IMG/VR virus record: IMGVR_UViG_3300009537_002640
Span: 142,496-206,495 of that record
Direction: 5' to 3' (one strand)
Length of the DNA: 64,000 nucleotides
The translations under genes and the position numbers were made by a program. Shown in pieces: positions 39,961-64,000 of the stretch (position 1 is its first letter; the number at the start of each line of letters is the position of its first letter). The notes beneath the pieces are model-generated. The model saw only the letters and a list, made by a program, of their open reading frames with translations, searched no databases and was not told the origin of the DNA.

Positions 39961-40114
39961 GAAAGTACCTCCAAAAATTAACCTACGGCTCTTCTGGTCG
40001 TATATTGGTCCGTCCCATAAGAGTCCATAGAGTATCAATTAGTTTTGATTTTCTTCGTCGGTATAACCGACAGGTGCACAACGAAGTCAAATCAGGTCTT
40101 ACAGAGAATCGAAA

Positions 40115-43089: not shown

Positions 43090-43698
43090 TTAGCTCCTTG
43101 GCCCCATATATCCTTGGGGACCATAATTTTTCGGGTCTAGCGATGGGTCTTTTGGAAGAAACTGAAAAGCACCAGCCATCTCTTCACCCTTCTCTCTGGC
43201 ACCCTCTTCATTTCCACTAGTAAACATATCGTAAATTTCGCCTATCTTGGTAAAGCCAAAAGCAAACAGTAGATACTTAGCTGCACGCCAAAGATTCTTT
43301 AGTAGTGCTCGTGGACTTATAACATATTTCCATATGAACTTAAGCACCACACTTGCGAACGCTTCCTTTACTATCTGGTTTTCCATAGAACTAGCGATTT
43401 TGTTTATTCGTTCATCGTTTAGGTTGGCTGTTGCTGGCATTCCAAAAAGCTGTGTAGTAACACCTTGTTCATCGAGCCATCTACCAAAGTCCTCTAACCC
43501 ATATCCGTAATTAGATAAAACTTTATCAAGGGCAGTTATCATCATTCCGCTCCAACCGAAAACAGATGGGGCGTATGATATCAATCTAAAAAGATTTTGC
43601 CCGGGGCCTTGATCGGTTCTCCACATACCTTGAACCATTTTCTTTATGCCTTCTGCAACAAATGCTCGTTTTGAAATATATCGCATAGCTTTGTCCAT
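43090..43698 (-). CDS. Putative ejection/internal protein with hydrophobic helices, about 202 aa
   Basis: Start refined to 43698 (TAATG coupling); ISKRA and IVKEA motifs; hydrophobic segments. Confidence 0.6.
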   Translation of the reverse strand: MDKAMRYISKRAFVAEGIKKMVQGMWRTDQGPGQNLFRLISYAPSVFGWSGMMITALDKVLSNYGYGLEDFGRWLDEQGVTTQLFGMPATANLNDERINKIASSMENQIVKEAFASVVLKFIWKYVISPRALLKNLWRAAKYLLFAFGFTKIGEIYDMFTSGNEEGAREKGEEMAGAFQFLPKDPSLDPKNYGPQGYMGPRS

Positions 43699-49097: not shown

Positions 49098-50486
49098 TTA
49101 TTCTCCTCTGAGTTTATCAATAAATTGACCTTCTGGACCATAATCTTCCATGTTCCACAAGTGCTCGCGGCTCTTAGTGTTTACTAAGTAGCCAGTATCT
49201 AAATCTTCTTCCGATAATTCCTCGACATCGGTTTCTCTATCAACATCTTCTTCGTTCTTAGGTTCCCATTCTTCTTCAACAAATGTCCCTTCTGGGGCCT
49301 CCTCTAAGGTTCCAAACATCGGGTCAACCATATATCGGCGCTCATCTTCCTCTCCCGGACGTCTTTTCAGCTCCTTGAAAACTCCGTGTGGCTCCCAACC
49401 TTTATCGGTGGGGTCTTTTTCTCGTTCTTCTTTAGGTCGTAAGTCTACAAAACGCTCCCAGTCTGCCGCAATCGCATCTAGTTCTGTAGCTAGTTCGTGC
49501 TGGCCTTTGACATCCAGAACTGTTGCCACTTTTGCAAGCCTCATGGCTATTTTCAAATATAATCCTTTGTTCATATTAGCCTCATGAAGAGAACGTCCAC
49601 CAGTAAGTTTTATGTACTCTTTTCCTAAATTATTTCTCCAGCCCTGTACGGCTCCTCTAAATTTACGCATCATTGGGGACTTAGGATCAGCGCCCTTATC
49701 CAACAGTTGCTTATATTTTTCCATCTCTATAGCTATGCGTGTTTTAAGTACCTTTACAACCCTATCTAGAAAAAAGTTTTTGTAACGTTCTGTCTCTTTC
49801 CCATCACCTATCTGAGCCCACATACCAATTCTTCTACCTAGCTTCTGAAATTTACTCTGGGTATTTAAATCTTTAGCAAACAGCTGTCCTTTTTCATCCG
49901 ATTCAGCCACCCTAACGATTGCTTCAAATAAATTTGGCAAATGTCTGGCTAGACTATGTGCCACACCTGACTTTTCCCAAGTATTAGATGCGTCTAGAAG
50001 CACCAGCGGATCATTTTCTATAAGAAACTTTGCACCCTCATGTATATATGGCTCAAATTGTGGGTCTGTTCTTCTACTATACTGATTAAAAAAGTAGATT
50101 ATTCGTTCTGGATTACCCATAACCTCGTTATCAAGCACCCAGCCAGTAATTGGATCGTAAAATGTCTCCTTCATATATCTGCCAGCCAAATATGCCATTG
50201 GATTTCGTCTGGCCACAGTAGCAGCATTTTGAGCATCTTCCAATTCTTCCGAACCACTATAAGTTTTTAGAACATCATCTAGGCTTAATTCATGCATCAT
50301 AGTAGGAGATATGCTTAACGATGATGAGGGAGTTTCTATGTACTTCACTCCAGGTGTCTGAGTAATATCTTCACCACTATACTCTACTGGTTCTTGCGTC
50401 TCAAATGTAGGAAGTGGTGGAATAGGAACTGGCAACTGGTCTTCGTCGTCACCCGACCACTTGAATATCATATTGCCTATTCGCAT
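49098..50486 (-). CDS. Putative internal head protein, 462 aa
   Basis: Helical core, hairpin tag LAKVATVLDVKGQHELATELDAIA, acidic tail. Confidence 0.65.
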   Translation of the reverse strand: MRIGNMIFKWSGDDEDQLPVPIPPLPTFETQEPVEYSGEDITQTPGVKYIETPSSSLSISPTMMHELSLDDVLKTYSGSEELEDAQNAATVARRNPMAYLAGRYMKETFYDPITGWVLDNEVMGNPERIIYFFNQYSRRTDPQFEPYIHEGAKFLIENDPLVLLDASNTWEKSGVAHSLARHLPNLFEAIVRVAESDEKGQLFAKDLNTQSKFQKLGRRIGMWAQIGDGKETERYKNFFLDRVVKVLKTRIAIEMEKYKQLLDKGADPKSPMMRKFRGAVQGWRNNLGKEYIKLTGGRSLHEANMNKGLYLKIAMRLAKVATVLDVKGQHELATELDAIAADWERFVDLRPKEEREKDPTDKGWEPHGVFKELKRRPGEEDERRYMVDPMFGTLEEAPEGTFVEEEWEPKNEEDVDRETDVEELSEEDLDTGYLVNTKSREHLWNMEDYGPEGQFIDKLRGE

Positions 50487-50760: not shown

Positions 50761-53700
50761 TTAGCGCCAATTAAGCTGTGCCAACTGCTCATTTAGGCTT
50801 GGGGCATTAACTGGTTCTGGACTTGCGGTAACAGTCATTGATTGACCGGCACCATCAGCTCCTACACGGGGTAGGGAACCGCCCTTCCTAGAATTGTAGT
50901 TAGCTACTACACGCTTATTTGACTCAAAAGCTGCGTCATCAAAGTTCATCAGCTGGTCAACGTATCCCTCAAGGGATGCCTGAGTAGAAGCGATTAGCCC
51001 CTTCTCCTGAGCCTGGAGACCTACTGCATACGCTCTGCGTAGCTTGGTCTTGTACTCTCCGTTGTCAGCTTCCTTCTTCTTAGAAGCAAACTCTTTGCTC
51101 AAGTCTGCACCGAAGCTACCAGTGTCAGGACCTTGTGCCCAGAACTTCTTCCAGTAAGAAGCTGCTGCTGAGTCAACCTTACCCTCAGCCACCAACCTAT
51201 CAACATCTTCAGCCTTGAGTGCGCCCTTAACAATTGCCTCTTGAATGAGAGCAGCTGCCTCACGCACATTTCTTGGGCCAGATTCAGCGACATCTCGCAT
51301 TACATCGTGAATCTCAGAAATGGTTTCAACATGAGCACCGTCTGTCTTGGTATGAGTTAGCTCAGTTGTAGTACCCTTTCCGCCTGGATGAGCCTCAAAG
51401 TACTCTTTCTGAGTTGCATTCTCTGCCTTGCCCAAATCCAACTCATACTTTCCAAGGATGTCACCTGCTTGAGCAAGAAGAGCATCACGCTCAGCCTTGC
51501 GAGCAGCCATTACAGAATCTAGAGCTTCGTCAACTGCGAAGTCACCATCATCTGCCATCATTGCCCCACCACATGACTCATCATGTGCATGGTCCTCGGC
51601 ACACATTGGTGCATCTGCATCATCCTCGTCTTTCTTCTTCTTTTTCTCATCCTTCTCATATTCATCTTCTTCATCCTCGTCGGACTCTTTATCCTTTGCG
51701 AGGTCAGGATGCGTAAGCTCGCCCTCTGGACCTTTTTCTTGCTTCTCTTCCTGCAGAAGCTTCATTAGAGAAGCCTCATCAGCATCAGTTAGAGCATAGT
51801 CCATCTCGTCGCCCATACCCATCATGTCCATATCACCCATAGCCTTAGCTAGAAGTGCAGCACGATTTTGAGCACGGACCCTTAGAGCTTGTTCTAGAAG
51901 TTCAGCAGCCTTCTTCTCGGCGTCAGACTTTTCGGACTTCTTATCTTCCTTCTCGTCCTCATCATCTTCATCCTCGTCTTTCTTCTTTTTCTTAGCTGCT
52001 TCTTTCTTCTTCTTATCCTCTTTGTCATCCTCATCTTTGTCTTTCTTGTCTGCCTTTTCGTCTTCCTTATCATCGTCTTTCTTCTTGGCAGCTTCTTTTT
52101 TCTTATCTTTCTTCTTCTTATCCTCTTTATCATCCTCATCTTCATCGTCGTCTTTCTTCTTCTTAGCCAAGACAACTTCAGCTTGAGCAAGTAGAGTCTC
52201 GCTGTCGGCTAGAGCTTGAACAGCTGCACTAAGAACACGGCCCTTAGTTTCACCATCAAGGTCTTCTGCCTTATCAAGAGCTTCGCTCACAAGAGCTAGC
52301 TCATCAGCAGACTCATCTAGGAGGGAGTGAACCTCCATAGCCTCATCGCGGAACGCTAGAGTTTGTTCCATTGGACTTTCGGAACCACCTTCGCCTTCCT
52401 CGTCGACCTTAACTTCAATGTCGACTAGTTTCTCACCACCCTCATCAACAGCCTTGCGGATGTCGTCTAGAGCAGTTTCAATCTTAGTGAGGCCAGCTTC
52501 TACCTTGCCCTTGAGATCAGGCTCATCTTCCTTCTTCTCTGGTGCAGGTGCTTCACCCTCAGGAGCTGCAGGAGCAGCTTCTGGTGCAGGTGCGTCTCCG
52601 CCTGGAGCTGGTGCTCCACCTGCTAGAGGGTCAGCTCCACCGGGAGCCAAAGGATCTTGAGCACCCTTTAGGAGATATGAAACCTCATCAAAGCCTTCGG
52701 TGCGGATATGGCGAATAATATCCTTTCCGTAGTCCTTGGAGCTTAGATAATCCCAGTTCTCATCAAGCTGGTCATCAAAGATTTCCTTGCCGGTTGCAGT
52801 TAGAATCAACTTGTCACCAGCATACACATCCCAACGGGATGCATCCTTGACTAGATTGCCTTGGTCATCAGCGACCTTGGTAAACTTTGCACGAAGGCGG
52901 GCACGCAACCACATCTTCTTTACTTTCTCGTCGCCAGGAACCATACCATCGGTACCGCCCATGTCGTAGATGCCTTGTAGGTGCTTATCTTCGTTATCGC
53001 GGATTTTGTCCGCTTCCTCTTTTGGATACTTTTCCTTGCCAGGGGTTGGCTCATTGATACCACCACCGCCTAGCCAGTAAGCGCGACGTCGTAGTCTACG
53101 CTCCTGTAGTTGAGCTTCAGTTAGCTTTCCATCTTCAGCTGCATCCTTGTCAGTCTTCTGAACCTGCTCTAGCAGTGCTTGACGGCGTAGTTTACGCTCC
53201 TCAATCTCTGCTTTCTTCTTGTCGGCTTTACCGCCGCCAAGATTGCGGGTTTCCCACGTTCTTCCTTCATCGCCTGGGTGAAGACCTTCGGATCCAGTTT
53301 CTAATGGCTCGCCAACCATTTGCTTATCTTCAGTGTCACGGATTTTATCCGCTTCTTCCTTCTCATACTTAGGCTTACCTGGAGTAGGCTCATTAATGCC
53401 GCCTCCACCTAGCCAATATGCTCGACGTGCTTTGGCACGGGCACGTAATCTCGCAGAATTCATATTGTCGTCCTCCTTAGAGACTGTTTTTAACTCATTG
53501 AATGATTTACTTAGTTTTTCTATCTTGGATCGAAGGAGACGTATTTCATTAAAAAGAACACCCAGGTTTCCGTCTCCCTCTAGACTAGCCAATCTCTGAC
53601 TAGGCTCGACTGATATTGGTGTAGTGGTAGTGCGATACGTACCTTCACCGTTGCCAGCCATTGGACTTACACTTGGCTCTGACCCACCACCAGTAGCTGG

Positions 53701-54789
53701 TAAAGCAGGAGGAGCCTCGTCTGTTTCAGTATTGCCGATGCCGAATTTGGCAGCTAATACCTCTTCGATTTTTTCTTTTAGAGCAGGGTTGGTTACAGCC
53801 TTCAATGCCGCGACCAATTCACCCATATCCATATTTTCTAGACCATGTATGGGTGAGCTTTTAGCCTCTACTCTTTTAGTCTTTTGTTCGAGTTTCATTA
53901 GCGTGTTAAGCTTAGTTTGCATTTCGTTGATGTTGTCAGCAAGCGCTTGTAGTTCAGTTGGGTTTACACAGGCACCAACTAGCAACTCGTCAATACGCTC
54001 TTGTTTTTGTTCAGCGTAATTCTGCAAGCTTGCGACTATTTGTCGGATTTTTGCCAGACCATCAGCGCCATTAACTACGAGGCTTAGCTCGATTGGGCTT
54101 AGGTCTAGGTTCACTTCGCCATAATTTGTGCGTCCACGAACATGATGACAATAGTCTCGTTCGGTTCTCGCTACATGGCCACATTCGGTGCATACGGAGC
54201 GACCGACTGCCGTACCCATTGATACGCAATTAGCATATCCGGTTTCTACTTTGCGTGCTAGGTCAGGGTAATTCTTCCTATCTAACGCAAATAAAGCATG
54301 AACCCTCTTAAACTTAGGGTCATAGTAAGTATCGATTATTATTCCACGAATGCCGTCTACGCTATCACTCTTGTGGTCTTTGCATAGTGGCTTTCCTACC
54401 CAGTTCTTGTAGGCTTTTAGCAGCTCATCTTCAGGAAAAATGTCACCATTAGCATTCTTGTAGGGCTTTAGTCCATCAGGAGATTCCCATTTCACAGAGT
54501 GCTCGTTGCCCTTTACCTTAATAGGCACGAAAGACCCCTTAGCTGGCTTACCATTAGAAGCTAGAACGGGCTCACCTGTATCCTGGTCTATCAAACATGC
54601 TTCAGCAGCATGCATCATAATAGCGTGGCCATAAAGAAAGTCACTAGCTCTTGGAGCAATCCTCTTTAGCTTCTTGGCTAACTTAACAAACCTTTTGGCG
54701 ATTTGTTCGTCCGCTAGAGCTTCTTTCGGTGTCATCAGATTTGTGTCTGGTGAAAAGCTTAGATTCTCTCCGATTTTCCTAATAGCCAT
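50761..54789 (-). CDS. Prohead (maturation) protease fused to a large scaffold region, 1342 aa
   Basis: N-terminal HK97/herpes-type protease signatures: NGDIFPEDEL, KPLCKDH (H139), VSMG (S190), CTECG..YCHH zinc site, IELSLV..GAD; then about 1000 aa of acidic, K/D/E-rich and coiled-coil sequence. Confidence 0.85.
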   Translation of the reverse strand: MAIRKIGENLSFSPDTNLMTPKEALADEQIAKRFVKLAKKLKRIAPRASDFLYGHAIMMHAAEACLIDQDTGEPVLASNGKPAKGSFVPIKVKGNEHSVKWESPDGLKPYKNANGDIFPEDELLKAYKNWVGKPLCKDHKSDSVDGIRGIIIDTYYDPKFKRVHALFALDRKNYPDLARKVETGYANCVSMGTAVGRSVCTECGHVARTERDYCHHVRGRTNYGEVNLDLSPIELSLVVNGADGLAKIRQIVASLQNYAEQKQERIDELLVGACVNPTELQALADNINEMQTKLNTLMKLEQKTKRVEAKSSPIHGLENMDMGELVAALKAVTNPALKEKIEEVLAAKFGIGNTETDEAPPALPATGGGSEPSVSPMAGNGEGTYRTTTTPISVEPSQRLASLEGDGNLGVLFNEIRLLRSKIEKLSKSFNELKTVSKEDDNMNSARLRARAKARRAYWLGGGGINEPTPGKPKYEKEEADKIRDTEDKQMVGEPLETGSEGLHPGDEGRTWETRNLGGGKADKKKAEIEERKLRRQALLEQVQKTDKDAAEDGKLTEAQLQERRLRRRAYWLGGGGINEPTPGKEKYPKEEADKIRDNEDKHLQGIYDMGGTDGMVPGDEKVKKMWLRARLRAKFTKVADDQGNLVKDASRWDVYAGDKLILTATGKEIFDDQLDENWDYLSSKDYGKDIIRHIRTEGFDEVSYLLKGAQDPLAPGGADPLAGGAPAPGGDAPAPEAAPAAPEGEAPAPEKKEDEPDLKGKVEAGLTKIETALDDIRKAVDEGGEKLVDIEVKVDEEGEGGSESPMEQTLAFRDEAMEVHSLLDESADELALVSEALDKAEDLDGETKGRVLSAAVQALADSETLLAQAEVVLAKKKKDDDEDEDDKEDKKKKDKKKEAAKKKDDDKEDEKADKKDKDEDDKEDKKKKEAAKKKKKDEDEDDEDEKEDKKSEKSDAEKKAAELLEQALRVRAQNRAALLAKAMGDMDMMGMGDEMDYALTDADEASLMKLLQEEKQEKGPEGELTHPDLAKDKESDEDEEDEYEKDEKKKKKDEDDADAPMCAEDHAHDESCGGAMMADDGDFAVDEALDSVMAARKAERDALLAQAGDILGKYELDLGKAENATQKEYFEAHPGGKGTTTELTHTKTDGAHVETISEIHDVMRDVAESGPRNVREAAALIQEAIVKGALKAEDVDRLVAEGKVDSAAASYWKKFWAQGPDTGSFGADLSKEFASKKKEADNGEYKTKLRRAYAVGLQAQEKGLIASTQASLEGYVDQLMNFDDAAFESNKRVVANYNSRKGGSLPRVGADGAGQSMTVTASPEPVNAPSLNEQLAQLNWR

Positions 54790-56400: not shown

Positions 56401-57177
56401 TTATCGAGTCGAATCCCCGTAAGGACTCTCTAAATTACCATACCCGCTGTAAAAATAGGCATCGCTAAAGCCTTGAAACATACCAGCATTCTGATTATCA
56501 GTCACTCCTGTGCCAACTCTACCGTTAGAGCGAACCAAATCATCTAGCCCGTCTAGTGCCTCATCTGAGTTGTAGTACTCTGCCATCTCTTCTAACTCTT
56601 CGTCAGTCAATTCTGGCTCAGGAGGCATATTTTCAAGTGCCTCTAGCTCTTCTTCAGTATACTCTTTAACAGCATTATCCAACTCAGTGGCTTCTTCAAA
56701 TCGACCTTTTTCATCTAAGTCAGATGCTATTTGTAGAAGCCTAGCAGCTAATCGTGCAGATTCTGGTACATTAAACATACTATAACCTCCGCCTGTGCCA
56801 TCTCCACCTATATAACCCTGATTTTCAACGTTAGATTGCTCTTCCGGAATATAATCGGATGTCAAATCCTCTAAAGATGAGTCAATTGCTGCCATTGTAT
56901 CATAAAGAACCTTTGCCTTATCTATGAATCCGGCTTCTTCCAGATACTTAGCAAGGTCTGAAAGCTTAGACAAAGTGTGGGTTTCGGCATCCATACTATC
57001 ATTAGCATCGTCGTCTTTGTGTTTAAAGTACTCTACCTGCTGCTCTCTCTTTTCAGCCTGGCCACGGGAACTATAAGGGCCGCCAAGCTGTTTACGCTTG
57101 CCGTCCTTACCCTTCTTTCGAGAGAATAGCACGTATCCTTTGTCGGTTTTCCTAATGATTGCTGTTTTTATTAGCAT
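56401..57177 (-). CDS. Putative internal head protein with two hairpin tags, 258 aa
   Basis: LIKTA N-terminus, small basic domain (GYVLFS..KQLGGPY.SRGQAEKREQQVEYFKH), two copies of the tag. Confidence 0.65.
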   Translation of the reverse strand: MLIKTAIIRKTDKGYVLFSRKKGKDGKRKQLGGPYSSRGQAEKREQQVEYFKHKDDDANDSMDAETHTLSKLSDLAKYLEEAGFIDKAKVLYDTMAAIDSSLEDLTSDYIPEEQSNVENQGYIGGDGTGGGYSMFNVPESARLAARLLQIASDLDEKGRFEEATELDNAVKEYTEEELEALENMPPEPELTDEELEEMAEYYNSDEALDGLDDLVRSNGRVGTGVTDNQNAGMFQGFSDAYFYSGYGNLESPYGDSTR

Positions 57178-57184
57178 ATCGCAC

Positions 57185-57553
57185 TTATTCCTTAGTTTCC
57201 GGTGTTAATCGTTTATCTCGTATATCTTTAGATACTTCTTTCCAGGCTGGCTGTAATACTATAATGTCGTGCTGGCCATTTTGTCTGATAGCCGCCACAA
57301 AGAAAAATGTCTTAGACTTTCTTATTTCCGCTTTTTCGCCAGAACGCAAAGTGAATCTAGTTAATGGCTCAGCATTAGCATAGTCCCAAGCCATTATCTC
57401 GTGTATATCTCTTTTTTTTAACCCTTGCATTTTAGGGTCGTTTGCAAATAGTCTTTGCCAATATTCACGCGCAGAACGGCTTACACCTACACCAGCACTG
57501 GTAGGGGTAAACACGCCGCATTTGTAAATATCGTGTCGAATAGATAACATCAT
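57185..57553 (-). CDS. Hypothetical protein, about 122 aa
   Basis: Start refined to 57553 (ATGA overlap). Confidence 0.5.
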   Translation of the reverse strand: MMLSIRHDIYKCGVFTPTSAGVGVSRSAREYWQRLFANDPKMQGLKKRDIHEIMAWDYANAEPLTRFTLRSGEKAEIRKSKTFFFVAAIRQNGQHDIIVLQPAWKEVSKDIRDKRLTPETKE

Positions 57554-58260
57554 TTTCCAACTAGTCGCAAAAATCTCTCTATCTTGTGTGATGGAATGCA
57601 TATCCCTAAATGGTCAAATGCTGTATGCCCCATGGAAAGTAGACCTATAACCTCTCCGCTATCATTGAATACAGGGCTACCGGAGTTTCCTCCTGCTGCC
57701 GCTGCCGATATGATAAGCCTATCTCGGATTAATGGAGTAACATCTTTTGACGGATTGATAACCACACCAGGCTCTTCATACATCATAAACCCCAATGGTG
57801 CGCCCACTAACATCACTTTGTCTTTTCGCTTCACTGTACTATAGTCAGCGAACTTAACAGGCTTTAGATTATGCTTTGGTAGTCTCATCAAACAAAGGTC
57901 GTTTGATTCATCCATCTCCAGCATCTCTACGCCGTTTCGTTGTATCTCTACATCTTCTAGTAGATACGTTAACTTGATATTGTCTTCTAGTATGTCCATT
58001 ACTTGAAGCTCAAATATAGCAACACAGACATGACCAGCTGTTATTAAATGGTCTTCATCATAAGCAAAAGCAGTTCCGTTGATCTCGTTAACACTTTTTC
58101 TCGCTTTTACTGAAACCATGCCCACTGAGCGGGCAAGGTTGGTTGGCAAATCCTCTCTTCTAGCTTCCTCTTGCTGAGTAACTACTACTGGCTCGGGAGC
58201 ATGTACATTTATAGAACACCCCGTAAGCATTAACACTAGTAGCACAAAGATGCGTTTCAT
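57550..58260 (-). CDS. Lipoprotein trypsin-fold (S1/HtrA-like) serine protease, 236 aa
   Basis: MKRIFVLLVLMLTG-C lipobox signal; TAGH, DLCL and GNSGSP catalytic triad motifs; no PDZ domain. Confidence 0.88.
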   Translation of the reverse strand: MKRIFVLLVLMLTGCSINVHAPEPVVVTQQEEARREDLPTNLARSVGMVSVKARKSVNEINGTAFAYDEDHLITAGHVCVAIFELQVMDILEDNIKLTYLLEDVEIQRNGVEMLEMDESNDLCLMRLPKHNLKPVKFADYSTVKRKDKVMLVGAPLGFMMYEEPGVVINPSKDVTPLIRDRLIISAAAAGGNSGSPVFNDSGEVIGLLSMGHTAFDHLGICIPSHKIERFLRLVGK

Positions 58261-58886
58261 TCGTCTGAGGAACGCTCTTTGGTTTTTGCCATTGTATCTA
58301 ACATGTCATCAAACTGACTAGCTAGTTTGGTGTCTCCTTGCTCATCTAAAAAGCTTGCAATTGAAACCAGGTCCTCTGGTTGCATCCTTAAGCCTACTCG
58401 CTGAGCCAGGTCAGCCACTACTTCATCAATAGCCCTGGCCTCGTCATAAAGACCATCCTTATCTAGCTTGTAAGCAACTTTGAATAATTTAGCTAACATG
58501 GAATCCCTCCTTAAACTAGATTCTTTTTCTAACTCCTTCTGAAGCTCAATTTCCTTCTTCAGCAAGAATGATAGACGTTTTGCCTCTTCTTCTGTTATAT
58601 CATCTCTTTCCTTTAGGCGATGTATGTTCTCTGCAACCTCATCGAGTTGCTTTCGTGTTCGTTCTTTGGATGCCTTCTTTTCTGGAACTCGGTCCCGTTT
58701 AGATATTTGCTTTCTTTTCTTTTCAGTGAGATTATGAAACCATATATCTCCTATAGTGGCAGCTATCTGTTCCTCAGAGTACTCAGGAGAGTTTTTCTTT
58801 ATCTCCTTTTTCATCTTATCAAACCACTTCTTAGGTGGGCGTTGTTTCTTTTGAGATTTTTCTTTTGCAATTACCCGTTGAGTCAT
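58257..58886 (-). CDS. Basic helical protein with two hairpin tags, about 209 aa
   Basis: Start refined to 58886 (AAGGAG RBS); LFKVAYKLDKDGLYDEARAIDEVV and LVSIASFLDEQGDTKLASQFDDML. Confidence 0.65.
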   Translation of the reverse strand: MTQRVIAKEKSQKKQRPPKKWFDKMKKEIKKNSPEYSEEQIAATIGDIWFHNLTEKKRKQISKRDRVPEKKASKERTRKQLDEVAENIHRLKERDDITEEEAKRLSFLLKKEIELQKELEKESSLRRDSMLAKLFKVAYKLDKDGLYDEARAIDEVVADLAQRVGLRMQPEDLVSIASFLDEQGDTKLASQFDDMLDTMAKTKERSSDE

Positions 58887-58897
58887 TTGAAAGCTCC

Positions 58898-59218
58898 TTA
58901 TACAATATCTCGTGTCTTTCCGTTTCGTGGACGGCCATAGTGAACAGTAGAGGTGGTGCTGTCGCTTAGGCGGAAGCCAGAACCTACTTCCCAAAACATT
59001 TTGACAAAATCTTCGCTTATGTAAAACTCATTACCTTTATCGTTCCTAAGCTTTAGAATACCACAGTCTTCATCGTAATCTATAGGGGTAGCGATAACGA
59101 TTGTGTAGGACTGTGCATCACCATCAGCATAAGATAGCCACTCAGAATCCAGGTCGATAAAAAGCTCTAACTTCTTGTTAAGAAAGTTAGTAGCTATGAA
59201 TTTGCCATTTTTTGCCAT
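58898..59218 (-). CDS. Small beta-rich hypothetical protein (possible Sm-like barrel), 106 aa
   Basis: GAGG RBS; beta-strand pattern only, fold call tentative. Confidence 0.55.
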   Translation of the reverse strand: MAKNGKFIATNFLNKKLELFIDLDSEWLSYADGDAQSYTIVIATPIDYDEDCGILKLRNDKGNEFYISEDFVKMFWEVGSGFRLSDSTTSTVHYGRPRNGKTRDIV

Positions 59219-59230
59219 TTTAATCCTCTA

Positions 59231-59629
59231 TTAAGTATTGTATCGGGCTTTTCCACGAGTACCAACATATTTTAGTCGTATATGTCTATTGGACGCATCA
59301 ACTTCCCAAATTGCCGCATAAGCTGATCTTCCGCCTGTTAAATGACAATGAAAGAGTCCAGAAGATAATAGTTTACTAAAGTTAGGCCATTTATACAGGT
59401 ATGGACTTTTTTTCAGATCCGTAATAAGATTATGTGCAGTTTCTTGAATCCGCTTGGGCAATTTCGAAATCCCCTTTAATACTGACTTCGGAATATCCAC
59501 AGTCCATTCTTTTGCAGTTTCTGGGTCGGAAGAGTATGAAATTAATATCTCATCTATTTGATCAGCAATATCATAATATCCTAGTTTGTCTAGTCTATTA
59601 GCCACATTGCACAGTGTTTTCAAAAACAT
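59231..59629 (-). CDS. RelE/ParE-superfamily toxin-like domain with N-terminal hairpin tag, 132 aa
   Basis: WTVDIPKSVLKGISKLPKRIQ...FSKL...FHCHLTGG..YAAIWEV...IRLKYVGTRGKARY matches a RelE-like pattern; GGAGG RBS. Confidence 0.7.
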   Translation of the reverse strand: MFLKTLCNVANRLDKLGYYDIADQIDEILISYSSDPETAKEWTVDIPKSVLKGISKLPKRIQETAHNLITDLKKSPYLYKWPNFSKLLSSGLFHCHLTGGRSAYAAIWEVDASNRHIRLKYVGTRGKARYNT

Positions 59630-62600
59630 TATTCCCCTCCATTTCCCTGTATAGCTCTAGTCGTCCCGCTCGTTTTGACAAAGCTTTTGGTTTAGAGCTG
59701 GCAAATCTAGAATCCCTTTTGAGTTTAGCAACAGAATCATAAAACATTACCATCTCGTATGGAACGTCCAGTACGTTTCTATTATCCTCTATTCGTATGC
59801 TCTTATGTGGAGGCATCTTTTCAAGAACATTCTGTATTGTCTTCAAGTAGCTGTCTGAAAGTGCACCAGGAACATCAAAGGTAGAAAACATATCCATTTT
59901 AGCAACCCTCATCCAACCCTTAGATAATGCATCCTCATAAGTAGGTTCTTCGTCCGGACCAAAGTAACCAAAAAACTCTGGATGGTCCTTTATAAAGAGT
60001 ATATGTCCATTAGGCGCATCATAGAGCTTGCCATCCGGAGAAAACCACCAGGCATTGTAATCTGCTCGCTTAGATAGTGATTTCTTACCAAATGGAATAC
60101 GCTTCTTATTTCCACAGCTCCATACTTGAACATGGTTAGCTGTCCAAGAACCACTTGGTACTTCGCCATCGAACTTCTCTTTAGGTGGTTCCATGTATTC
60201 AAGTGTCACGTGAGGTTTGTAGGATGGAAAATGATCATCAACCTCTACGCCTGCTTCAATCAAAGCTTTTTTCAGTGCCTTGTGCAACTTATGTAACTCT
60301 TTGGACACCACAGCCATCTTAGCAATCTTACAATTATCAGAATGCTTGGTTGCAGGAAAGTAAGTCGGCTTCTTATCTAGTTCTAACTTTATAGGGCTAA
60401 AGTCCTTGATAACATCACGTACCACGCCATACACAGTCTCCTGCTTTTTCTCAGGCACATCTCCTATGTACAATACTGTTACATGAGTGGCGCTATCGTC
60501 GTGTTCGCCTAAAGAGGGAAATTGCTTAGACATGTCTTTTGGCAGAAGTATAAACACACCAGCACCATGTTTTCTGTCCTTTTTCTTCTCGTCTCTTTTA
60601 GAAAGCTTCTTTACGCCATCCCTAATTGATAGTGATTTCTTGCTTACCATTTCCTCTGCCCACTCTGGCAGTTCAAGCTCCATCTTATTAGGGTCTTTTA
60701 TGTTGCGTGCATTATTGGCGCTCTCTATGTAGTCAGGATAGTCCTTGTCCAAACCTAAGTCAAAGAAGGAATCAGGGTTGGTATCTACTAATTGAACTAT
60801 TGCGCCGCGACCAAGCTCAGGGAACTTATGATGTAAGTGATAGTAGAAGAATGCACGTGCATCTTGCTGAGACAAAGCCTCAGCTGCAGCTTCTAGTAAC
60901 TCCTTAAACTCATCTTCTTCGCGCTCATGATACTTGAATACAAAATAGAACTTGGCATTGTCCTCTAACATGTTTTTCAATGCAAGAGCCTCTTCCTCTG
61001 GGCATTCTTTATGTAGCCCGCGATAGAAGAATGCATCAGGGTCGTTCTCTGCTAATTGTTTAGCTTCGTTGTCGCTAACATCGTGAATATCGTGCTCTGG
61101 CTCTTCCTCGTCTCTGTGTCTAAAGATAGGAGCCTTCTCAAACCAGTCACCCATCTCATCATCTTCGCCATGACCCATGTCTTCGTCATTAAGCTCATTG
61201 TTGATTTCAAATATAAGGTCTGGCACAGTTTGATTGTGTGCTATTTTGAAAGCATCAGCAAACTTGCTAACTATTTCATTAGGCACACCAGATGCCACCA
61301 TGTCTTCATACAGATACGGAGCTATGGTTATTTGGTCATAGTACTCTGGCTCTGCATAAGCTCTACCCAAATACCTCTGCTTGGCACTCGTTAAAGCCTG
61401 TGGGTCGAACTTAGCTTCGTATATGTTGACATGAACAGCATTATTTACCGGCTCAATTTTAGCCGTCATTCTCACCGGGACATCTTTGTCTCCTGACAAT
61501 ACCTTTACCGCTCTAGCTATAGCATTTAGGTCTGCTCCAGAAACATCAAATGCTGTTCCCTTAAGGTGTGCTGGATGTTTCTCTGGCACTTTAGGCGGGC
61601 CAACTATGTAGCGAAATTGCTTAGTCAGAATCCTGGCCTTTTGTGCAGGGTCAGTTACAGTAGGGTAGTATATGTTAGCACGATATCTTTTCCACGCATT
61701 TTCAATGATTTTAGTCTGGTCTTCTAGTGTGCGAGAGCCAGAAGTTAAACGTGCCCCAGGTGGTAAAAATGGGCTTAGCATTGCCCATGCACTTAGTATA
61801 GTTTCATTAATCTTAGCCCTAGGAGAAATATTTAGTGCTTTCCTCTGATCCTCAGATAACTGCACTCCTCCCTCCTCTTTAGGAACAACACTTACAGATG
61901 GAGAAAGTTTCTCTTTCATTTCCCTAACTCTCTCTGTATGCTGCTCGGTTAGCGCCCTAACAGATAGTGATTGGCGCTTAACCATACGAGGCTGTTGTTT
62001 TTGATAAAGAGCGGCAACGAAATCTTTCATAGGAGGCATGACAACACTGCTGCCCAAAACTACATGAATAGCGTTATTGGCTGGCTCCACCAAAGAGCTT
62101 ATAACCTGAATAGAGCCAGGGAACGCTGCAGCAACCTCCATAAGGGTCTTATTAATGGCCCTAAGATTACTTCCAGTAATATCAAATGCTACACCTTCCT
62201 GATGTTCAGACTCGCCAACGAAAGCTATATCTGGTACCTGTACACCCTTAGGAGACTTATTCCTAATATAGCTTACCATTTGATTGAGGCGCCTCTTCTC
62301 TCTGCGATTAAAATCCTTGTCGTTTACGGCCTTCCAATACATTACTCTCAACTCTTGGTCTGTTATCCCAAGCTCTTTAGAGAAAGTAGTATGATAGACA
62401 CCCTGGTTTCGCTTCCACTCGCCAGGCTTACCAGCGTAACTTCTCCAGTACTCCAAAACTATCTTGGCCTGTTCACCTGCGCCACGATAAGCACTACTAA
62501 GGTATGTATTGTTTGGCATAAACGGAGCTATTATTCTCCATGCGCGTTCAATGCTTGGGGTTAACGTCGCGGACTCGTACACATTAGTGACGTTTTTATT

Positions 62601-63470
62601 AACGTCTACCAGTTGTGCATAGTTCTCCCATCGAGACGGGTCAGTTACCGGCGCGTTTACATCTACAGGTGGAGTAGGAGTATGCTTAATGGTGCTTACA
62701 GGAAGCTCTTCTTCCTCCATATATGATTGCGCTCGTATGCTAAAAGCCTTCTTTTCCTTTTTCTCTTCTTTACCTTCGTGCTTTTCTACAAGTTCAGGGT
62801 CAAGATACTGATTCTTGAGAGTAGAGGCTTTGTGACCAACTATATCTGCCACCTCCTCTAGTGCCTCTTTAAAATCCTTCTTCTTTAACATTTCCTTCAT
62901 AAGACGATTGGCGTGAAACCCTCGCAAATCTTTAGCGCTGATATCAAATGGTTTCAGATATCTATTAACGGCACGATCCCAAATCTTCTTACCATCGATT
63001 TCAAATATGAAGTCATCAGCCTTTTTACCCTTCATAAGGTCTCTGATAGCCTTAATAACCTCATTATTTTCAAGCACAACGTTTTGTTCCACTTCACCTT
63101 TTCCAGGAAAATCAAAAGTCATTTTCCCTGAGCCGCCCTTAACGTGCTTTACTTTAAGAGTAGATGCTCCGTAGGTTCCTTCACGAGCAGATTCCTCATT
63201 ACCAATGCGCATAGCTGTCTCATCCATAATTCCAACTATGGCTGCAATAGCTTTGGTTCGTTCATCATCGGACTTTAGGTCTTCGCGATACTGCTTACGC
63301 ACCTTATCAAGCTCTTTTTCCAACTTCTTGAGCTTATCTTTCTTCTCTTCCCAGCGCTTTTCAACATGCTTCTCGTCGTATACCCACACGTATCCCTTAT
63401 CGGTCTTCTTCTTTTCCTTGTAAGCCGGTTTGTCAGAGGTAACTTTTGCTCGTTTACTTAGCAGGTTCAT
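59598..63470 (-). CDS. Polyvalent polyprotein: DNA topoisomerase IB + two M15 Zn-peptidases + 4 helical repeats + 2H phosphoesterase + C-terminal domain, 1290 aa
   Basis: TopIB R88, K124, K180/R183, H213, Y222; M15 motifs S[AG]xR..H..G.AFD..H twice (H423/D430/H469 and H635/D642/H680); HVT996-998 and HVT1087-1089. Confidence 0.85.
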   Translation of the reverse strand: MNLLSKRAKVTSDKPAYKEKKKTDKGYVWVYDEKHVEKRWEEKKDKLKKLEKELDKVRKQYREDLKSDDERTKAIAAIVGIMDETAMRIGNEESAREGTYGASTLKVKHVKGGSGKMTFDFPGKGEVEQNVVLENNEVIKAIRDLMKGKKADDFIFEIDGKKIWDRAVNRYLKPFDISAKDLRGFHANRLMKEMLKKKDFKEALEEVADIVGHKASTLKNQYLDPELVEKHEGKEEKKEKKAFSIRAQSYMEEEELPVSTIKHTPTPPVDVNAPVTDPSRWENYAQLVDVNKNVTNVYESATLTPSIERAWRIIAPFMPNNTYLSSAYRGAGEQAKIVLEYWRSYAGKPGEWKRNQGVYHTTFSKELGITDQELRVMYWKAVNDKDFNRREKRRLNQMVSYIRNKSPKGVQVPDIAFVGESEHQEGVAFDITGSNLRAINKTLMEVAAAFPGSIQVISSLVEPANNAIHVVLGSSVVMPPMKDFVAALYQKQQPRMVKRQSLSVRALTEQHTERVREMKEKLSPSVSVVPKEEGGVQLSEDQRKALNISPRAKINETILSAWAMLSPFLPPGARLTSGSRTLEDQTKIIENAWKRYRANIYYPTVTDPAQKARILTKQFRYIVGPPKVPEKHPAHLKGTAFDVSGADLNAIARAVKVLSGDKDVPVRMTAKIEPVNNAVHVNIYEAKFDPQALTSAKQRYLGRAYAEPEYYDQITIAPYLYEDMVASGVPNEIVSKFADAFKIAHNQTVPDLIFEINNELNDEDMGHGEDDEMGDWFEKAPIFRHRDEEEPEHDIHDVSDNEAKQLAENDPDAFFYRGLHKECPEEEALALKNMLEDNAKFYFVFKYHEREEDEFKELLEAAAEALSQQDARAFFYYHLHHKFPELGRGAIVQLVDTNPDSFFDLGLDKDYPDYIESANNARNIKDPNKMELELPEWAEEMVSKKSLSIRDGVKKLSKRDEKKKDRKHGAGVFILLPKDMSKQFPSLGEHDDSATHVTVLYIGDVPEKKQETVYGVVRDVIKDFSPIKLELDKKPTYFPATKHSDNCKIAKMAVVSKELHKLHKALKKALIEAGVEVDDHFPSYKPHVTLEYMEPPKEKFDGEVPSGSWTANHVQVWSCGNKKRIPFGKKSLSKRADYNAWWFSPDGKLYDAPNGHILFIKDHPEFFGYFGPDEEPTYEDALSKGWMRVAKMDMFSTFDVPGALSDSYLKTIQNVLEKMPPHKSIRIEDNRNVLDVPYEMVMFYDSVAKLKRDSRFASSKPKALSKRAGRLELYREMEGNNVFENTVQCG

Positions 63471-63753
63471 TAATGTTCTCCGGGTCTAAGTTGCGTACGT
63501 ATCGTTTGTTTCTTGTCATCCAATCTAATAGTTTGCCCAGGTTTCTAATTACAACTCTTCTGTGCCATGTGGGCTCCATAGTGCAAAGTGTATCGTATAT
63601 ATGTCGTGCTGTCTTAATAACCTCATCAGCGTGCGAAGGACTAGAGTGCTTTTTGGCAATATCGAACTCTATTTTGAGTGTTCGCATAGCTTTATTGATA
63701 GTGTGAGTATTCTCGTAGTCCAAGAATATGTTCATTTTTGCCAGCATATTCAT
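63454..63753 (-). CDS. Hypothetical helical protein, 99 aa
   Basis: Intact ORF, AAGGG RBS. Confidence 0.5.
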   Translation of the reverse strand: MNMLAKMNIFLDYENTHTINKAMRTLKIEFDIAKKHSSPSHADEVIKTARHIYDTLCTMEPTWHRRVVIRNLGKLLDWMTRNKRYVRNLDPENINEPAK

Positions 63754-63763
63754 GAGCTAACCC

Positions 63764-64000
63764 TTATACTGGTGGAGGACCACCAGCTCCTCCGCCACCT
63801 AGACCACCGCCACCTGGTGGAGGGCCACCCATGCCTCCGCCTGAACCGCCTCCTGGGCCTCCCATAGGTGGCATTGGCGGACCACCGCCTCCACCACCAC
63901 CTAATGGTGGTGGGCCACCCATACCGCCACCAGGACCGCCCATTCCACCTGGGCCTCCTGGCATTGCTCCAGGAATACCAGACTCTTCGGCTCCTGGAGT
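63764..64000 (-). CDS. Partial CDS (runs off right edge): Gly/Pro/Met low-complexity C-terminus
   Basis: Frame open from 64000 (TPGAEESGIPGAMPGGPGGMGGP...GGPPPV*); identity of the upstream domain unknown. Confidence 0.6.
   Translation of the reverse strand, partial: TPGAEESGIPGAMPGGPGGMGGPGGGMGGPPPLGGGGGGGPPMPPMGGPGGGSGGGMGGPPPGGGGLGGGGAGGPPPV

Follow-up and report, generated by a model that had tools for sequence, protein, structure and literature searches.

A compact type IB topoisomerase module in a putative motif-punctuated head polyprotein of a phage-G-like huge phage

Poxviruses carry a type IB topoisomerase (TopIB) in the virion core, where it supports early transcription, and the question arises whether a bacterial virus could likewise provide its incoming genome with such an enzyme. 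This question is raised by a locus in the IMG/VR virus record IMGVR_UViG_3300009537_002640, of which we analysed a stretch of 64,000 nucleotides (positions 142,496 to 206,495, hereafter the window). The original prediction placed a complete minimal TopIB, with little or no N-terminal domain, at 62775-63398 (-) of the window within a late or structural polyprotein. It interpreted the enzyme as a strategy convergent with that of poxviruses, relaxing or organising phage DNA during packaging or immediately after ejection. In the following we initially ask whether the domain is a TopIB, then examine the remainder of the protein and its genomic surroundings, and finally weigh what such a protein may be for.

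The predicted interval corresponds to residues 25-232 of a single open reading frame (ORF) of 1290 aa, for which no alternative genetic code was needed (Table 1; the protein is referred to as P0001 and its modules as M0 to M8). Pfam PF01028 (Topoisom_I) matches aa 41-242 with an E-value of 7.5e-31 and 107.7 bits against a cut-off of 23.7, covering profile positions 10-221 of 228, and the same family was recovered with 112 bits in a search of the genome. All five motifs listed in the original prediction are present and hold the TopIB pentad, i.e. R88 (MRIGN), K124 (FPGKG), R183 (SAKDLR), H213 (VGH) and Y222 (QYLDP), the position of the catalytic tyrosine having been given exactly. These five residues are invariant in an alignment of 24 homologous modules, which are 57-93% identical across the family, and the first three align with MRVGDE, FLGKD and AKVFR of solved TopIBs, including human and archaeal enzymes. 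The AF2 model (pLDDT 80.3, pTM 0.76) points in the same direction: Foldseek returned 22 TopIB chains at E-values of 2.9e-11 to 2.2e-6, headed by variola TopIB (2h7f, 2.9e-11) and Deinococcus radiodurans TopIB (3m4a, 3.7e-11) and including human Top1, whereas tyrosine recombinases appeared only from 1.6e-5 (XerH). A closer match to tyrosine recombinases, which had been named beforehand as a ground for rejecting the assignment, was thus not found, and tyrosine recombinase identity is rejected. The claim of little or no N-terminal domain is likewise correct, since only a beta-hairpin precedes the catalytic domain, and neither PF21338, which accompanies PF01028 in bacterial TopIBs, nor any other N-terminal domain was detected even at E<=1. 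This clamp domain accompanies the family but does not define its catalysis, although a TopIB lacking it may bind DNA weakly. The observation behind the original prediction is therefore real.

Table 1. Features of the analysed window, in window coordinates, with supporting evidence.
Position	Strand	Feature	Residues	Support
59598..63470	-	Whole polyprotein ORF (P0001), stop codon included	1290 aa	47 relatives
63450..63470	-	Putative N-terminal propeptide ending in L-S-K-R (site 1; cut predicted after R7)	aa 1-7	Most relatives start M-x(0-12)-[I/L]SKRA; aa 1-12 disordered in the model
62733..63449	-	Module M0, TopIB: beta-hairpin (aa 17-31), catalytic domain, then Lys/Glu-rich spacer ending F-S-I-R (cut predicted after R246)	aa 8-246	Pfam match, invariant pentad, AF2 and Foldseek (see text)
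62805..62807	-	Codon of the catalytic tyrosine Y222; other pentad codons: R88 63207-63209, K124 63099-63101, R183 62922-62924, H213 62832-62834		Invariant alignment columns
61956..62732	-	Module M1a, LAS/VanY-type zinc peptidase, ends L-S-V-R	aa 247-505	Weak VanY hit; invariant R329, Q334, H423, D430, H469; AF2 pLDDT 85; LAS structural matches
61326..61955	-	Module M1b, second LAS-type peptidase; boundary to the next module degenerated to Y-L-G-R-A	aa 506-715	BLAST to M1 modules of relatives, down to 1.7e-45
60621..61325	-	Module M3, acidic helical module of unknown function (pI 4.4), ends L-S-I-R	aa 716-950	50-69% identical to 11 M3 modules; shared with Rctr197k_173; no Pfam, NCBIfam or protein-atlas hit
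60594..60620	-	Nine-residue spacer between two adjacent sites (L-S-I-R-D and L-S-K-R-D)	aa 951-959	Paired sites 9-11 residues apart recur in relatives
60066..60593	-	Module M2, 2H phosphoesterase (LigT-like), ends L-S-K-R	aa 960-1135	PF13563 3.5e-10; TIGR02258 2.5e-9; H996/T998 and H1087/T1089 invariant in 11/11
59670..60065	-	Module M8, unknown function, ends L-S-K-R	aa 1136-1267	In 4 family members in different positions; no family hit
59601..59669	-	C-terminal 23-residue tail after the last site	aa 1268-1290	
63764..64000	-	3' end of the portal gene (Gly/Pro-rich C-terminal tail), cut by the contig end		Same tail on the portal genes of related loci L004 and L006; L004 gene is portal (phrog_16240, 1.3e-54)
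63454..63753	-	Small ORF between portal and polyprotein, overlapping the polyprotein start by 17 nt	99 aa	Equivalent 51-111-aa ORFs in six loci
50761..54789	-	ORF with HK97-type prohead-protease-like N-terminus (about aa 112-262); preferred candidate processing protease	1342 aa	phrog_18299 1.3e-15; NF045541 3.8e-6; ~1264-1275-aa ORF at the same place in L004 and in the contig of relative P0009
57550..58260	-	HtrA/MarP-like S1 serine protease with lipoprotein signal (lipobox L-T-G-C); alternative candidate protease		Trypsin_2 4.8e-15; NCBIfam; orthologues with a lipobox in L004 and L011
58257..58994	-	Head-module ORF with internal I-S-K-R-D site and two copies of the helix motif		Site conserved in the orthologue of related locus L011
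43698..45347	-	ORF with L-S-K-R-A site at aa 320, directly before an endolysin-like region	549 aa	
43090..43773	-	ORF with I-S-K-R-A site near its N-terminus (likely start M-D-K-A-M-R-Y-I-S-K-R-A)		
17251..17772	-	ORF with I-S-K-R-A site at aa 17-21	173 aa	
38935..40038	-	Major head protein (context marker)		phrog_2522 1.2e-78; 53.5% identical to Bacillus phage G gp27
33600..37187		Tail sheath		

What, then, accompanies the TopIB in the same chain? Behind it follow two LAS/VanY-type zinc peptidase modules, an acidic module, a 2H phosphoesterase and a module of unknown function. The peptidase assignment rests on the His-Asp-His zinc ligands, which together with the conserved Arg and Gln are invariant in 23/23 modules, and on structural comparison, in which the top 12 matches of a VIA-wide search are all LAS enzymes, albeit at middling Z scores of 5.3-7.3. 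These include T5 L-Ala-D-Glu peptidase, Ply500 and LysB4. By contrast, the Pfam VanY hit remains below threshold (E 2-3e-3), and Foldseek gave no hit to the M1 model at E<=0.001, although its top hits were LAS enzymes. The 2H phosphoesterase profile reaches 40.6 bits against a cut-off of 27, and both H-x-T motifs are intact, while the TIGR02258 hit lies below its equivalog cut-off. Protein-atlas searches with M3, and with M8 plus the C-terminal tail, returned nothing.

The modules are separated by a short motif, [I/L/F]-S-[K/I/V]-R-[A/D], of which P0001 has seven copies against 0.065 expected from shuffled sequences. About 40 metagenomic relatives carry the same motif, with 172 copies in 48 family proteins against 2.8 expected and a shuffle maximum of 8. 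The spacing of the copies is domain-sized, a Lys-rich spacer of variable length precedes each copy, and the flanks are disordered in both AF2 models (M0 and M1a). A DNA-level repeat as the origin of the motif is rejected, because the seven copies use Ser codons from both the AGY and TCN boxes and Arg codons from both the CGN and AGR boxes, so that selection acts on the peptide. Cutting the family proteins at the motif yields cassettes that recur in different orders and combinations, as seen when segments were clustered at 70% mutual coverage. In addition to the modules of P0001, these cassettes include ligase, LigD-PE/PrimPol, CCA/polyA-polymerase, HD and ART-PolyVal modules. The motif decays in the non-polyprotein relatives, namely a stand-alone 248-aa TopIB and fusions of TopIB with Peptidase_M23. 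The latter are the closest short TopIB relatives and possess the M23 domain instead of the LAS module, which argues for a pairing of TopIB with a cell-wall peptidase. The word polyprotein, a guess in the original prediction, has thereby gained real support, whereas the shuffled kit of cell-wall peptidases and nucleic-acid end-processing enzymes to which the TopIB cassette belongs had been missed.

The genomic context agrees with a late or structural location, as originally claimed. The order terminase - portal - small ORF - polyprotein is found in the window and five related loci, and the polyprotein lies near the genes for the major head protein, the tail sheath and a protein with a prohead-protease-like N-terminus. 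The small ORF lies in relative frame +1 to the polyprotein in 5 of 6 loci, which is not significant as an indication of a frameshift fusion. In the entire 206-kb contig, every other high-scoring site of the motif lies in four further ORFs of the structural region, two of them at N-termini like propeptides, and none lies in the other 142 kb. A further enzyme string of 1843 aa in the head module of related locus L010, which lacks TopIB, has six sites. However, neither the prohead-protease-like ORF nor the major head protein carries a copy of the motif, which is unusual if the same protease matures them. No cultured phage carries this protein, and among 50,697 phage records only one partial match was found apart from TopIB. 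Phage G, considered as a cultured model, had to be dropped, since its first 50 kb, from terminase to beyond the major head protein, contain neither the polyprotein nor the motif.

These findings are best explained, with a probability of roughly 0.55, by a capsid-packaged "polyvalent" polyprotein of a phage-G-like huge phage. In this view the protein would be made late, taken into the prohead and cut after the Arg of each linker into modules of 15-30 kDa, which would stay with the DNA and be ejected into the next host. The two LAS peptidases would open the peptidoglycan locally. The TopIB module, which needs neither ATP nor metal, would relax torsional stress in the very large incoming genome and/or reseal 5'-OH breaks before any phage gene is expressed, and the likewise cofactor-free 2H phosphoesterase would heal 2',3'-cyclic-phosphate RNA ends or destroy cyclic-nucleotide defence signals. 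In relatives, the ligase, LigD-PE/PrimPol, CCA/polyA-polymerase/HD and ART modules would extend the same pre-packaged repair and counter-defence kit. Our analysis establishes the domain identities with their intact active sites, the motif with its enrichment, its place in disordered linkers and its conservation at the protein level, the shuffling of cassettes and the synteny with the head module. Cleavage, packaging, ejection, the identity of the protease, and the enzymatic activity, substrate and role of TopIB are, on the other hand, inferred from sequence, gene position and analogy, without direct evidence of expression, cleavage, packaging or activity. Of these, cleavage appears more likely than not, packaging and ejection slightly less so, and the HK97-type enzyme encoded 5 kb downstream is the most likely but still tentative candidate for the protease. 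A search of its protease region against the PDB gave nothing meaningful, and a complex prediction of aa 60-320 of this ORF with a 41-residue linker peptide gave no answer (score 0.05), which is not evidence either way. The functional interpretation in the original prediction is therefore only partly supported: the domain, its completeness and its setting were right, but virion packaging and an action on DNA at packaging or after ejection, convergent with poxviruses, rest on gene position and analogy.

Several alternatives have to be weighed against this reading. The chain could remain uncleaved and travel as one protein of ~148 kDa, like N4 vRNAP, with the motif serving as a structural linker or as a docking or targeting element, for example for capsid incorporation or portal binding. 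Indeed, some polyvalent proteins (N4 vRNAP, ArdC, TraC1) are noted to travel unprocessed (PMC5512222), the motif occurs at extreme N-termini where a cut would remove only 5-12 residues, it is absent from the protease ORF and the major head protein, and one boundary in P0001 has lost the site without loss of the modules. We nevertheless regard this as unlikely, because an invariant small-residue-x-Arg followed by Ala/Asp in a disordered, Lys-rich spacer of variable length is typical of protease sites, because the motif is retained at nearly every boundary through extensive shuffling while it decays in single-module relatives, and because modules with different cellular targets (periplasmic wall versus cytoplasmic DNA/RNA) are hard to reconcile with one tethered chain. 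Still less likely is a late cytoplasmic polyprotein that is not packaged, in which TopIB would relieve torsional stress on concatemers while about 500 kb is pumped into the head, the LAS peptidases would serve lysis and the other modules late nucleic-acid metabolism. A head-adjacent position alone does not prove packaging, action during packaging was one of the originally proposed options, LAS peptidases are common catalytic domains of endolysins, and in other jumbo phages TopIB lies among metabolism genes (phiRSL1 ORF108 sits between NAD-salvage and Nudix genes). However, the slot directly after portal is the classical place of head-internal or ejected proteins (PMC5512222), and a RelE-like effector, other motif-bearing proteins and the prohead protease are interleaved with it. 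Furthermore, endolysins need holin or signal routes, none of which is visible in this protein, and the family carries ART-PolyVal and other domains defined on injected proteins.

The remaining alternatives concern the protease and the use of TopIB. Processing could be carried out by the HtrA/MarP-like lipoprotein protease rather than by the prohead protease, be it in the envelope of the producing cell, in the cell after ejection, or in exclusion, where it would destroy the ejected polyprotein of superinfecting kin. Its gene lies 4-6 genes downstream of the polyprotein in the window, L004 and L011, and trypsin-fold enzymes commonly cut after Arg. This is the least likely alternative, as a lipoprotein signal would send the enzyme outside the cytoplasm, where heads assemble, the residue six positions before the catalytic Ser is Ala and not Asp in the window protein (by analogy to trypsin numbering), HtrA-type enzymes usually prefer aliphatic P1 residues, and the P0009 contig has the motif but no Pfam-recognised trypsin gene within 10 kb. 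It is also conceivable, though improbable on present evidence, that TopIB serves not as a relaxase of phage DNA but as an end-processing or strand-joining enzyme, or as a weapon, acting on 5'-OH/3'-phosphate breaks or ribonucleotide sites together with the 2H, LigD-PE, ligase and CCA modules, or nicking host DNA. The partner modules across the family are overwhelmingly nucleic-acid end-healing and sealing enzymes (PF13563/PF02834, PF13298, PF21686, PF01068/PF09414, PF01743+PF01966), and poxvirus TopIB has RNA-cleaving and DNA-RNA joining side activities. The full relaxase pentad and fold are conserved, however, and nothing in the sequence distinguishes these uses, which are compatible with packaging and differ only in the substrate.

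By homology, the protein belongs to the class of phage-type polyvalent proteins (Iyer, Burroughs, Anand, de Souza and Aravind 2017, PMC5512222), a link that the original prediction did not make. As in that class, several unrelated enzyme domains are joined in one polypeptide encoded among portal/terminase-type late genes, with a predicted role as pre-packaged early effectors, and 2H and cell-wall hydrolase domains are listed there among the phage-type polyvalent domains encoded with late/virion genes. ART-PolyVal (PF18760) occurs in the relatives P0009 and P0048, and Rctr197k_173, a GenBank relative that shares the M3 and 2H modules, carries the InPase domain. By contrast, TopIB was not found among the catalogued domains, although the word topoisomerase occurs once in that paper, in a passage that our reading did not cover. 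Neither an MPTase nor a MuF domain, the usual hallmarks of packaged polyvalent proteins, was detected in P0001, the only trace being a weak SprT-like hint (E 0.041) in module M9 of some relatives. Instead, a uniform short linker motif occurs at nearly every module boundary, implying processing in trans, and the modules behave as shuffled cassettes, each with its own site. A precedent for such processing is found in the internal and ejection proteins of T4 and of phiKZ-like giant phages (PMC10052503, PMC5694885). In SPN3US, the prohead protease gp245 recognises a short phage-specific motif (A-X-E) shared by several head proteins, N-terminal propeptides of 20-24 residues are removed, and enzymes such as the virion RNAP are ejected (PMC10052503). 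There, however, cleavage is after Glu and mostly removes propeptides from single-function proteins, whereas here the predicted cut is after Arg and would separate whole enzymes from one chain, and the candidate protease is HK97-like, not T4 gp21-like.

Both TopIB genes in jumbo phages and polyvalent proteins are already known, while the TopIB module within such a protein and the uniform linker signal are new. If the model holds, it would show how phages with genomes of about 0.5 Mb protect and manage their DNA in the minutes before any phage gene is expressed, by shipping a ready-made, energy-independent kit of topoisomerase, end-healing enzymes and wall peptidases. It would define a simple, portable processing and perhaps capsid-targeting signal, which could predict the injected proteome of uncultured huge phages from sequence alone and could be used to load cargo into capsids. 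It would likewise provide a natural catalytic-domain-only TopIB of about 27 kDa, smaller than the poxvirus enzyme and useful for enzymology and for the debate on how viral, bacterial and archaeo-eukaryotic TopIBs are related, and it would add TopIB and a trans-cleaved beads-on-a-string architecture to the catalogue of polyvalent effectors. A bolder possibility, which we consider less likely than not, is that phage-G-like huge phages use a previously undescribed polyprotein system, in which cofactor-independent repair, counter-defence and wall-opening enzymes are encoded as freely shuffled cassettes flanked by the same I/L-S-K-R-A signal (cut between Arg and Ala), matured in the head and injected with the genome. 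The smallest natural TopIB (about 225 folded residues) would be its near-universal first cassette, the first bacterial-virus counterpart of the poxvirus virion topoisomerase, and the system a trans-processed alternative to the MPTase-based polyvalent proteins.

How close is the module to other TopIBs? With the poxvirus enzyme (vaccinia/variola, 314 aa) it shares the fold, the pentad, a compact and cofactor-free organisation and a His-Tyr spacing of nine residues (H213/Y222, as in vaccinia H265/Y274), and the proposed logic of an enzyme pre-loaded in the particle is the same. The phage module is about 75 residues shorter, lacks the N-terminal DNA-binding domain, is part of a putative polyprotein and is packaged only by inference. 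By sequence, it scores better against archaeal-type TopIB (6z01, 6.6e-18) and human Top1 (~3e-12) than against variola (1e-8) or Deinococcus TopIB (6e-5). Bacterial TopIBs of the D. radiodurans and P. aeruginosa type share the fold of the catalytic domain but only about 30% identity (E about 1e-15), and always carry PF21338. Stand-alone TopIB genes, which the original prediction did not mention, are already annotated in jumbo phages (phiRSL1 ORF108, PaBG, Lu11, Xanthomonas PhiXhv, Rhizobium RHph; PMC7824862) and were noted by Iyer et al. 2021 as a "phage-specific version" of topoisomerase I. Their PF01028 domains are 24-30% identical to the module, but they are separate genes of about 500-560 aa with long N-terminal extensions. 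In a midpoint-rooted FastTree phylogeny of a mafft alignment, read without support values and containing no eukaryotic, archaeal or poxviral sequences, the bacterial enzymes form a separate clade and phiRSL1 is a long branch outside the clade that holds the polyprotein modules.

The stretch of the original prediction lies inside one uninterrupted ORF on the minus strand, and the catalytic core of a type IB topoisomerase (TopIB) was recovered there, with Pfam placing PF01028 (Topoisom_I catalytic core) on aa 41-242 at E 7.5e-31 and 107.7 bits against a gathering score of 23.7. The 206,495-bp IMG/VR viral contig, of which the window is the last 64 kb, contains no other TopIB. In an alignment of 24 homologous modules from metagenomic relatives, the residues R88, K124, R183, H213 and Y222 are invariant, while the module as a whole is 44-93% identical to that of the window protein (P0001). 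The five peptide motifs in which the original prediction had seen the catalytic residues (MRIGN, FPGKG, SAKDLR, VGH and QYLDP) are exactly these positions, and its observation is confirmed.

An AF2 model built on this alignment has a pLDDT of 80.3 and a pTM of 0.76. A Foldseek search of the PDB with this model lists 22 TopIB chains first, among them variola 2h7f at 2.9e-11, D. radiodurans 3m4a at 3.7e-11, human Top1 and the archaeal-type 6z01, while tyrosine recombinases appear only from 1.6e-5. A closer match to tyrosine recombinases, which had been named beforehand as grounds for rejection, was therefore not found. Ahead of the catalytic domain the model shows only a beta-hairpin (aa 17-31) and a long helix, and PF21338, which accompanies PF01028 in every bacterial TopIB recovered, is absent from P0001 at E<=1. 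By sequence the module scores best against 6z01 (6.6e-18) and human Top1 (~3e-12), whereas variola (1e-8) and Deinococcus (6e-5) score lower. Yet the module has the compact His-x8-Tyr arrangement (H213, Y222), which is the poxviral spacing. The vaccinia catalytic fragment 81-314 is reported to retain relaxation activity with weaker DNA binding, and the phage module looks like a natural version of that fragment.

The remainder of the protein is composed of further modules. Residues 247-505 and 506-715 are two diverged copies of a module (M1) that we assign to the LAS-family zinc peptidases. In M1, R329, Q334, H423, D430 and H469 are invariant in 23 sequences, the AF2 model has a pLDDT of 85, and the twelve best VIA-align matches are all LAS-family zinc peptidases (VldE, Hedgehog-N, VanXYg, T5 L-Ala-D-Glu peptidase, VanYB, Ply500, LysB4, Zn DD-peptidase, VanXYc and MepA). 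Their Z-scores of 5.3-7.3 are middling, so that the assignment rests on the convergence of these matches with the conserved ligands and the weak VanY HMM hits. Residues 716-950 (M3) form an acidic (pI 4.4), helical module of unknown function, which is 50-69% identical to 11 relatives but returned no hit in searches of protein families and of the protein atlas. Residues 960-1135 (M2) are a 2H phosphoesterase (PF13563 at 3.5e-10, TIGR02258 at 2.5e-9), with both H-x-T motifs invariant in 11/11 sequences, and residues 1136-1267 (M8) are a module of unknown function seen in four family members.

On reading the translation we noticed strings resembling L-S-K-R-A at every module border. The pattern [ILFMV]-S-[KIVLRAC]-R-[AD] occurs 7 times in P0001, against 0.065 in 2000 shuffles, and 172 times in the set of 48 family proteins, against 2.8 ± 1.8 in shuffles with a maximum of 8. 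The sequence logo is a Lys-rich stretch (…K-K-K-A-S) followed by [I/L]-S-[K>I,V,L]-R-[A>>D], and the spacings are domain-sized, with a small class of paired sites 9-11 residues apart. In the TopIB alignment the motif follows a Lys/Glu/Asp spacer of very variable length, and both AF2 models are disordered at their motif-bearing ends. The seven copies in the window use AGT, AGC, TCT and TCA for Ser, and CGA, AGG and AGA for Arg. The conservation therefore acts on the peptide and not on a DNA repeat.

When all family members were cut after the Arg and the pieces clustered with 70% mutual coverage, recurring modules were obtained: TopIB (M0, 24 occurrences), LAS peptidase (M1, 22), 2H (M2, 11), the acidic module of unknown function (M3, 11) and, with fewer occurrences, M8 and M9 (both unknown), M10 (PolyA_pol) and M16 (LigD PrimPol). 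These modules appear in different orders and combinations, although TopIB is usually first and a LAS module usually follows it. The precomputed Pfam content of relatives adds LigD 3'-phosphoesterase (LigD-PE), DNA/RNA ligase, HD, Tyr-phosphatase-like and ART-PolyVal domains. One border in P0001, between the second M1 copy and M3, has decayed to Y-L-G-R-A, while relatives keep a site there. The single-module relatives, i.e. a 248-aa stand-alone TopIB and the ~410-aa TopIB+Peptidase_M23 proteins, have only degenerate remnants of the motif. More distant relatives without the motif (P0039-P0048) exist, one of which (P0048) lies outside a recognisable head module.

A PSSM trained on the relatives places every other site scoring at least 12 bits in the 206-kb contig in four further ORFs, all of which lie in the structural region, and none in the other 142 kb. 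The site in the ORF immediately before the S1 protease gene in the table, E-K-K-R-K-Q-I-S-K-R-D, is identical in its orthologue in the related locus L011. In the head module of a further relative, locus L010, the TopIB polyprotein is followed by two more multi-enzyme genes, the longer of which lacks TopIB and has six sites, including an N-terminal one. In other relatives PolyA_pol (255 aa) and a DNA/RNA ligase are separate genes next to the terminase.

Coordinates of the features in the window and in related loci (L004, L006, L010, L011)
Locus	Coordinates	Strand	Feature
Window	59598..63470	-	Polyprotein ORF (P0001), 1290 aa
Window	62775-63398	-	TopIB stretch of the original prediction, residues 25-232 of P0001
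Window	63764..64000	-	Gly/Pro-rich fragment, conserved C-terminal tail of the portal gene, broken by the contig end
Window	63454..63753	-	Small ORF overlapping the polyprotein start
Window	59231..59629	-	Gene overlapping the 3' end of the polyprotein; helix motif followed by a RelE-like toxin domain
Window	58257..58994		ORF with a linker-type site; two copies of the helix motif
Window	57550..58260	-	HtrA/MarP-like S1 serine protease with lipoprotein signal peptide
Window	56401..57177		ORF with the helix motif
Window	50761..54789		1342-aa ORF starting with an HK97-type prohead-protease-like region
Window	49098..50486		ORF with the helix motif
Window	43698..45347	-	549-aa ORF with an L-S-K-R-A site at aa 320, directly before an endolysin-like region
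Window	43090..43773		ORF with a linker-type site right behind the likely start
Window	38935..40038	-	Major head protein
Window	33600..37187		Tail sheath
Window	17251..17772		ORF with a linker-type site right behind the likely start
Window	5801..17236	-	3811-aa ORF in the tail/structural region
L004	7682..9691		Portal gene with Gly/Pro-rich tail
L006	6529..9675		Portal gene with Gly/Pro-rich tail
L004	17870..18565		HtrA/MarP-like S1 serine protease
L011	16800..17489		HtrA/MarP-like S1 serine protease
L010	14764..17496		PolyA_pol+LigD-PrimPol, 910 aa
L010	18359..23890		2H+LigD-PE, 1843 aa

The genomic surroundings are those of a head module. The major head protein matches phrog_2522 at 1e-78 and is 53.5% identical to gp27 of Bacillus phage G, and the prohead-protease-like region is supported by phrog_18299 at 1.3e-15 and NCBIfam NF045541 at 3.8e-6. 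In five related contigs, up to 481 kb, the order is large terminase, portal (phrog_16240 at 1.3e-54, with inteins in three cases), a 51-111-aa ORF and then the polyprotein. The portal proteins of this clade end in a long Gly/Pro-rich low-complexity tail, and because the fragment at the end of the window is this tail, the same order holds there. The portal genes of L006, L010 and L011 carry inteins or LAGLIDADG endonucleases. In the window and in L004, L005, L006, L010 and L011 the small ORF always overlaps the polyprotein start by 4-38 nt, and the polyprotein is in the +1 frame relative to it in 5 of 6 loci. If the two were fused by frameshifting, the N-terminal motif would be a true inter-module site, but the overlap could equally be plain translational coupling. 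The S1 protease with its canonical lipobox lies 4-6 genes downstream of the polyprotein in the window, L004 and L011, i.e. inside the head-gene block of three huge phages. The role of this exported protease among head genes could be polyprotein processing, envelope remodelling or superinfection exclusion.

TopIB genes as such are already annotated in jumbo phages (phiRSL1, PaBG, Xanthomonas and Rhizobium phages) and were noted by Iyer et al. 2021 (PMC7824862), but those are separate ~500-560-aa genes in metabolic neighbourhoods. In a FastTree, which was midpoint-rooted and contained no eukaryotic or poxviral sequences, the polyprotein modules form a tight clade inside a phage-type group, together with the M23 fusions and short stand-alone huge-phage TopIBs including LR745208. 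This group is separate from the bacterial enzymes, while phiRSL1 is a long outlying branch. The overall architecture matches the 'polyvalent proteins' of Iyer et al. 2017 (PMC5512222), multi-enzyme proteins encoded with portal/terminase genes and predicted to be packaged and injected, in which 2H and wall hydrolases are typical phage-type domains and a zincin-like MPTase is the proposed processing device. A direct homology link exists in the GenBank protein Rctr197k_173 (2039 aa), which shares the M3 region and a 2H domain and carries InPase, DUF7178 and DUF5661, but has no TopIB and no motif. What P0001 adds to polyvalent, head-module effector proteins is a compact TopIB cassette and a uniform, probably trans-cleaved, linker signal that organises shuffled enzyme cassettes. 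In the incomplete literature searched, which allows no more than absence of evidence, we found no paper describing TopIB as a packaged or polyvalent module, or describing this linker motif. The best-studied functional analogy is the prohead-protease processing of head and ejection proteins in SPN3US, phiKZ and T4, where the motif is A-X-E and propeptides can be as short as 20-24 residues (PMC10052503).

Taken together, the evidence fits a head-associated polyprotein that would be cut by a phage protease at the S-x-R|A/D linkers, with the pieces leaving the capsid with the DNA. The domain assignments, the recurrent linker motif, the shuffling of cassettes and the gene order result directly from the sequences, whereas cleavage, packaging, ejection and any activity of the TopIB module are inferred without an experimental datum. 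Several features fit this view especially well. TopIB and 2H enzymes need no nucleotide cofactor or metal, a wall peptidase is paired with TopIB in two independent ways (as LAS or as M23), a protein with a RelE-like toxin domain is encoded immediately downstream, and the family's other modules are DNA/RNA end-repair and counter-defence enzymes. On the other hand, no cultured carrier exists and phage G lacks the protein in its first 50 kb, from terminase to beyond the major head protein, the prohead-protease-like ORF and the major head protein carry no motif, and no MuF or MPTase domain was found in P0001, while a single complex prediction for the processing step returned no answer. We estimate a probability of about 0.65 that the motif is a cleavage site and of about 0.55-0.6 that the products are packaged or ejected. 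The precise task of TopIB could be relaxation or end-joining. The original interpretation is partly supported, while the role it predicted, relaxing or organising DNA during packaging or immediately after ejection, is an inference from gene position and analogy.

The RelE-like domain of the gene overlapping the polyprotein's 3' end was matched by phrog_32175 at 4.9e-7 and by phrog_1213 ('RelE-like toxin') at 3.4e-3, while Pfam found nothing at E<=0.01, and its product is a second candidate packaged effector. The helix that precedes this domain belongs to a ~25-residue motif, roughly [L/I]-A-x-x-L-D-x-x-G-x-x-x-E-A-x-x-L-D, which recurs in otherwise unrelated small proteins of the head module in three phages, including four ORFs in L004 and two in L006. 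It is absent from the first 50 kb of phage G and from the polyprotein itself, and may be a shared anchoring or capsid-targeting helix. The 549-aa protein has an Ala/Gly-rich hydrophobic N-terminal region, and its linker-type site lies immediately before the endolysin-like region (phrog_1512 at 6e-5). It may be a second wall hydrolase released by the same processing.

The longest ORF of the major head protein (TTG start) is 367 aa, but similarity to phage G gp27 (282 aa) begins at residue 71, which is due either to an N-terminal propeptide or to an over-long start call; it contains no I/L-S-K-R-A site. Across the window nearly all long ORFs are on the minus strand, with steadily negative GC skew and about 43% GC, and the 206-kb contig is rated only 25% complete by CheckV, in keeping with relatives of 481-498 kb.
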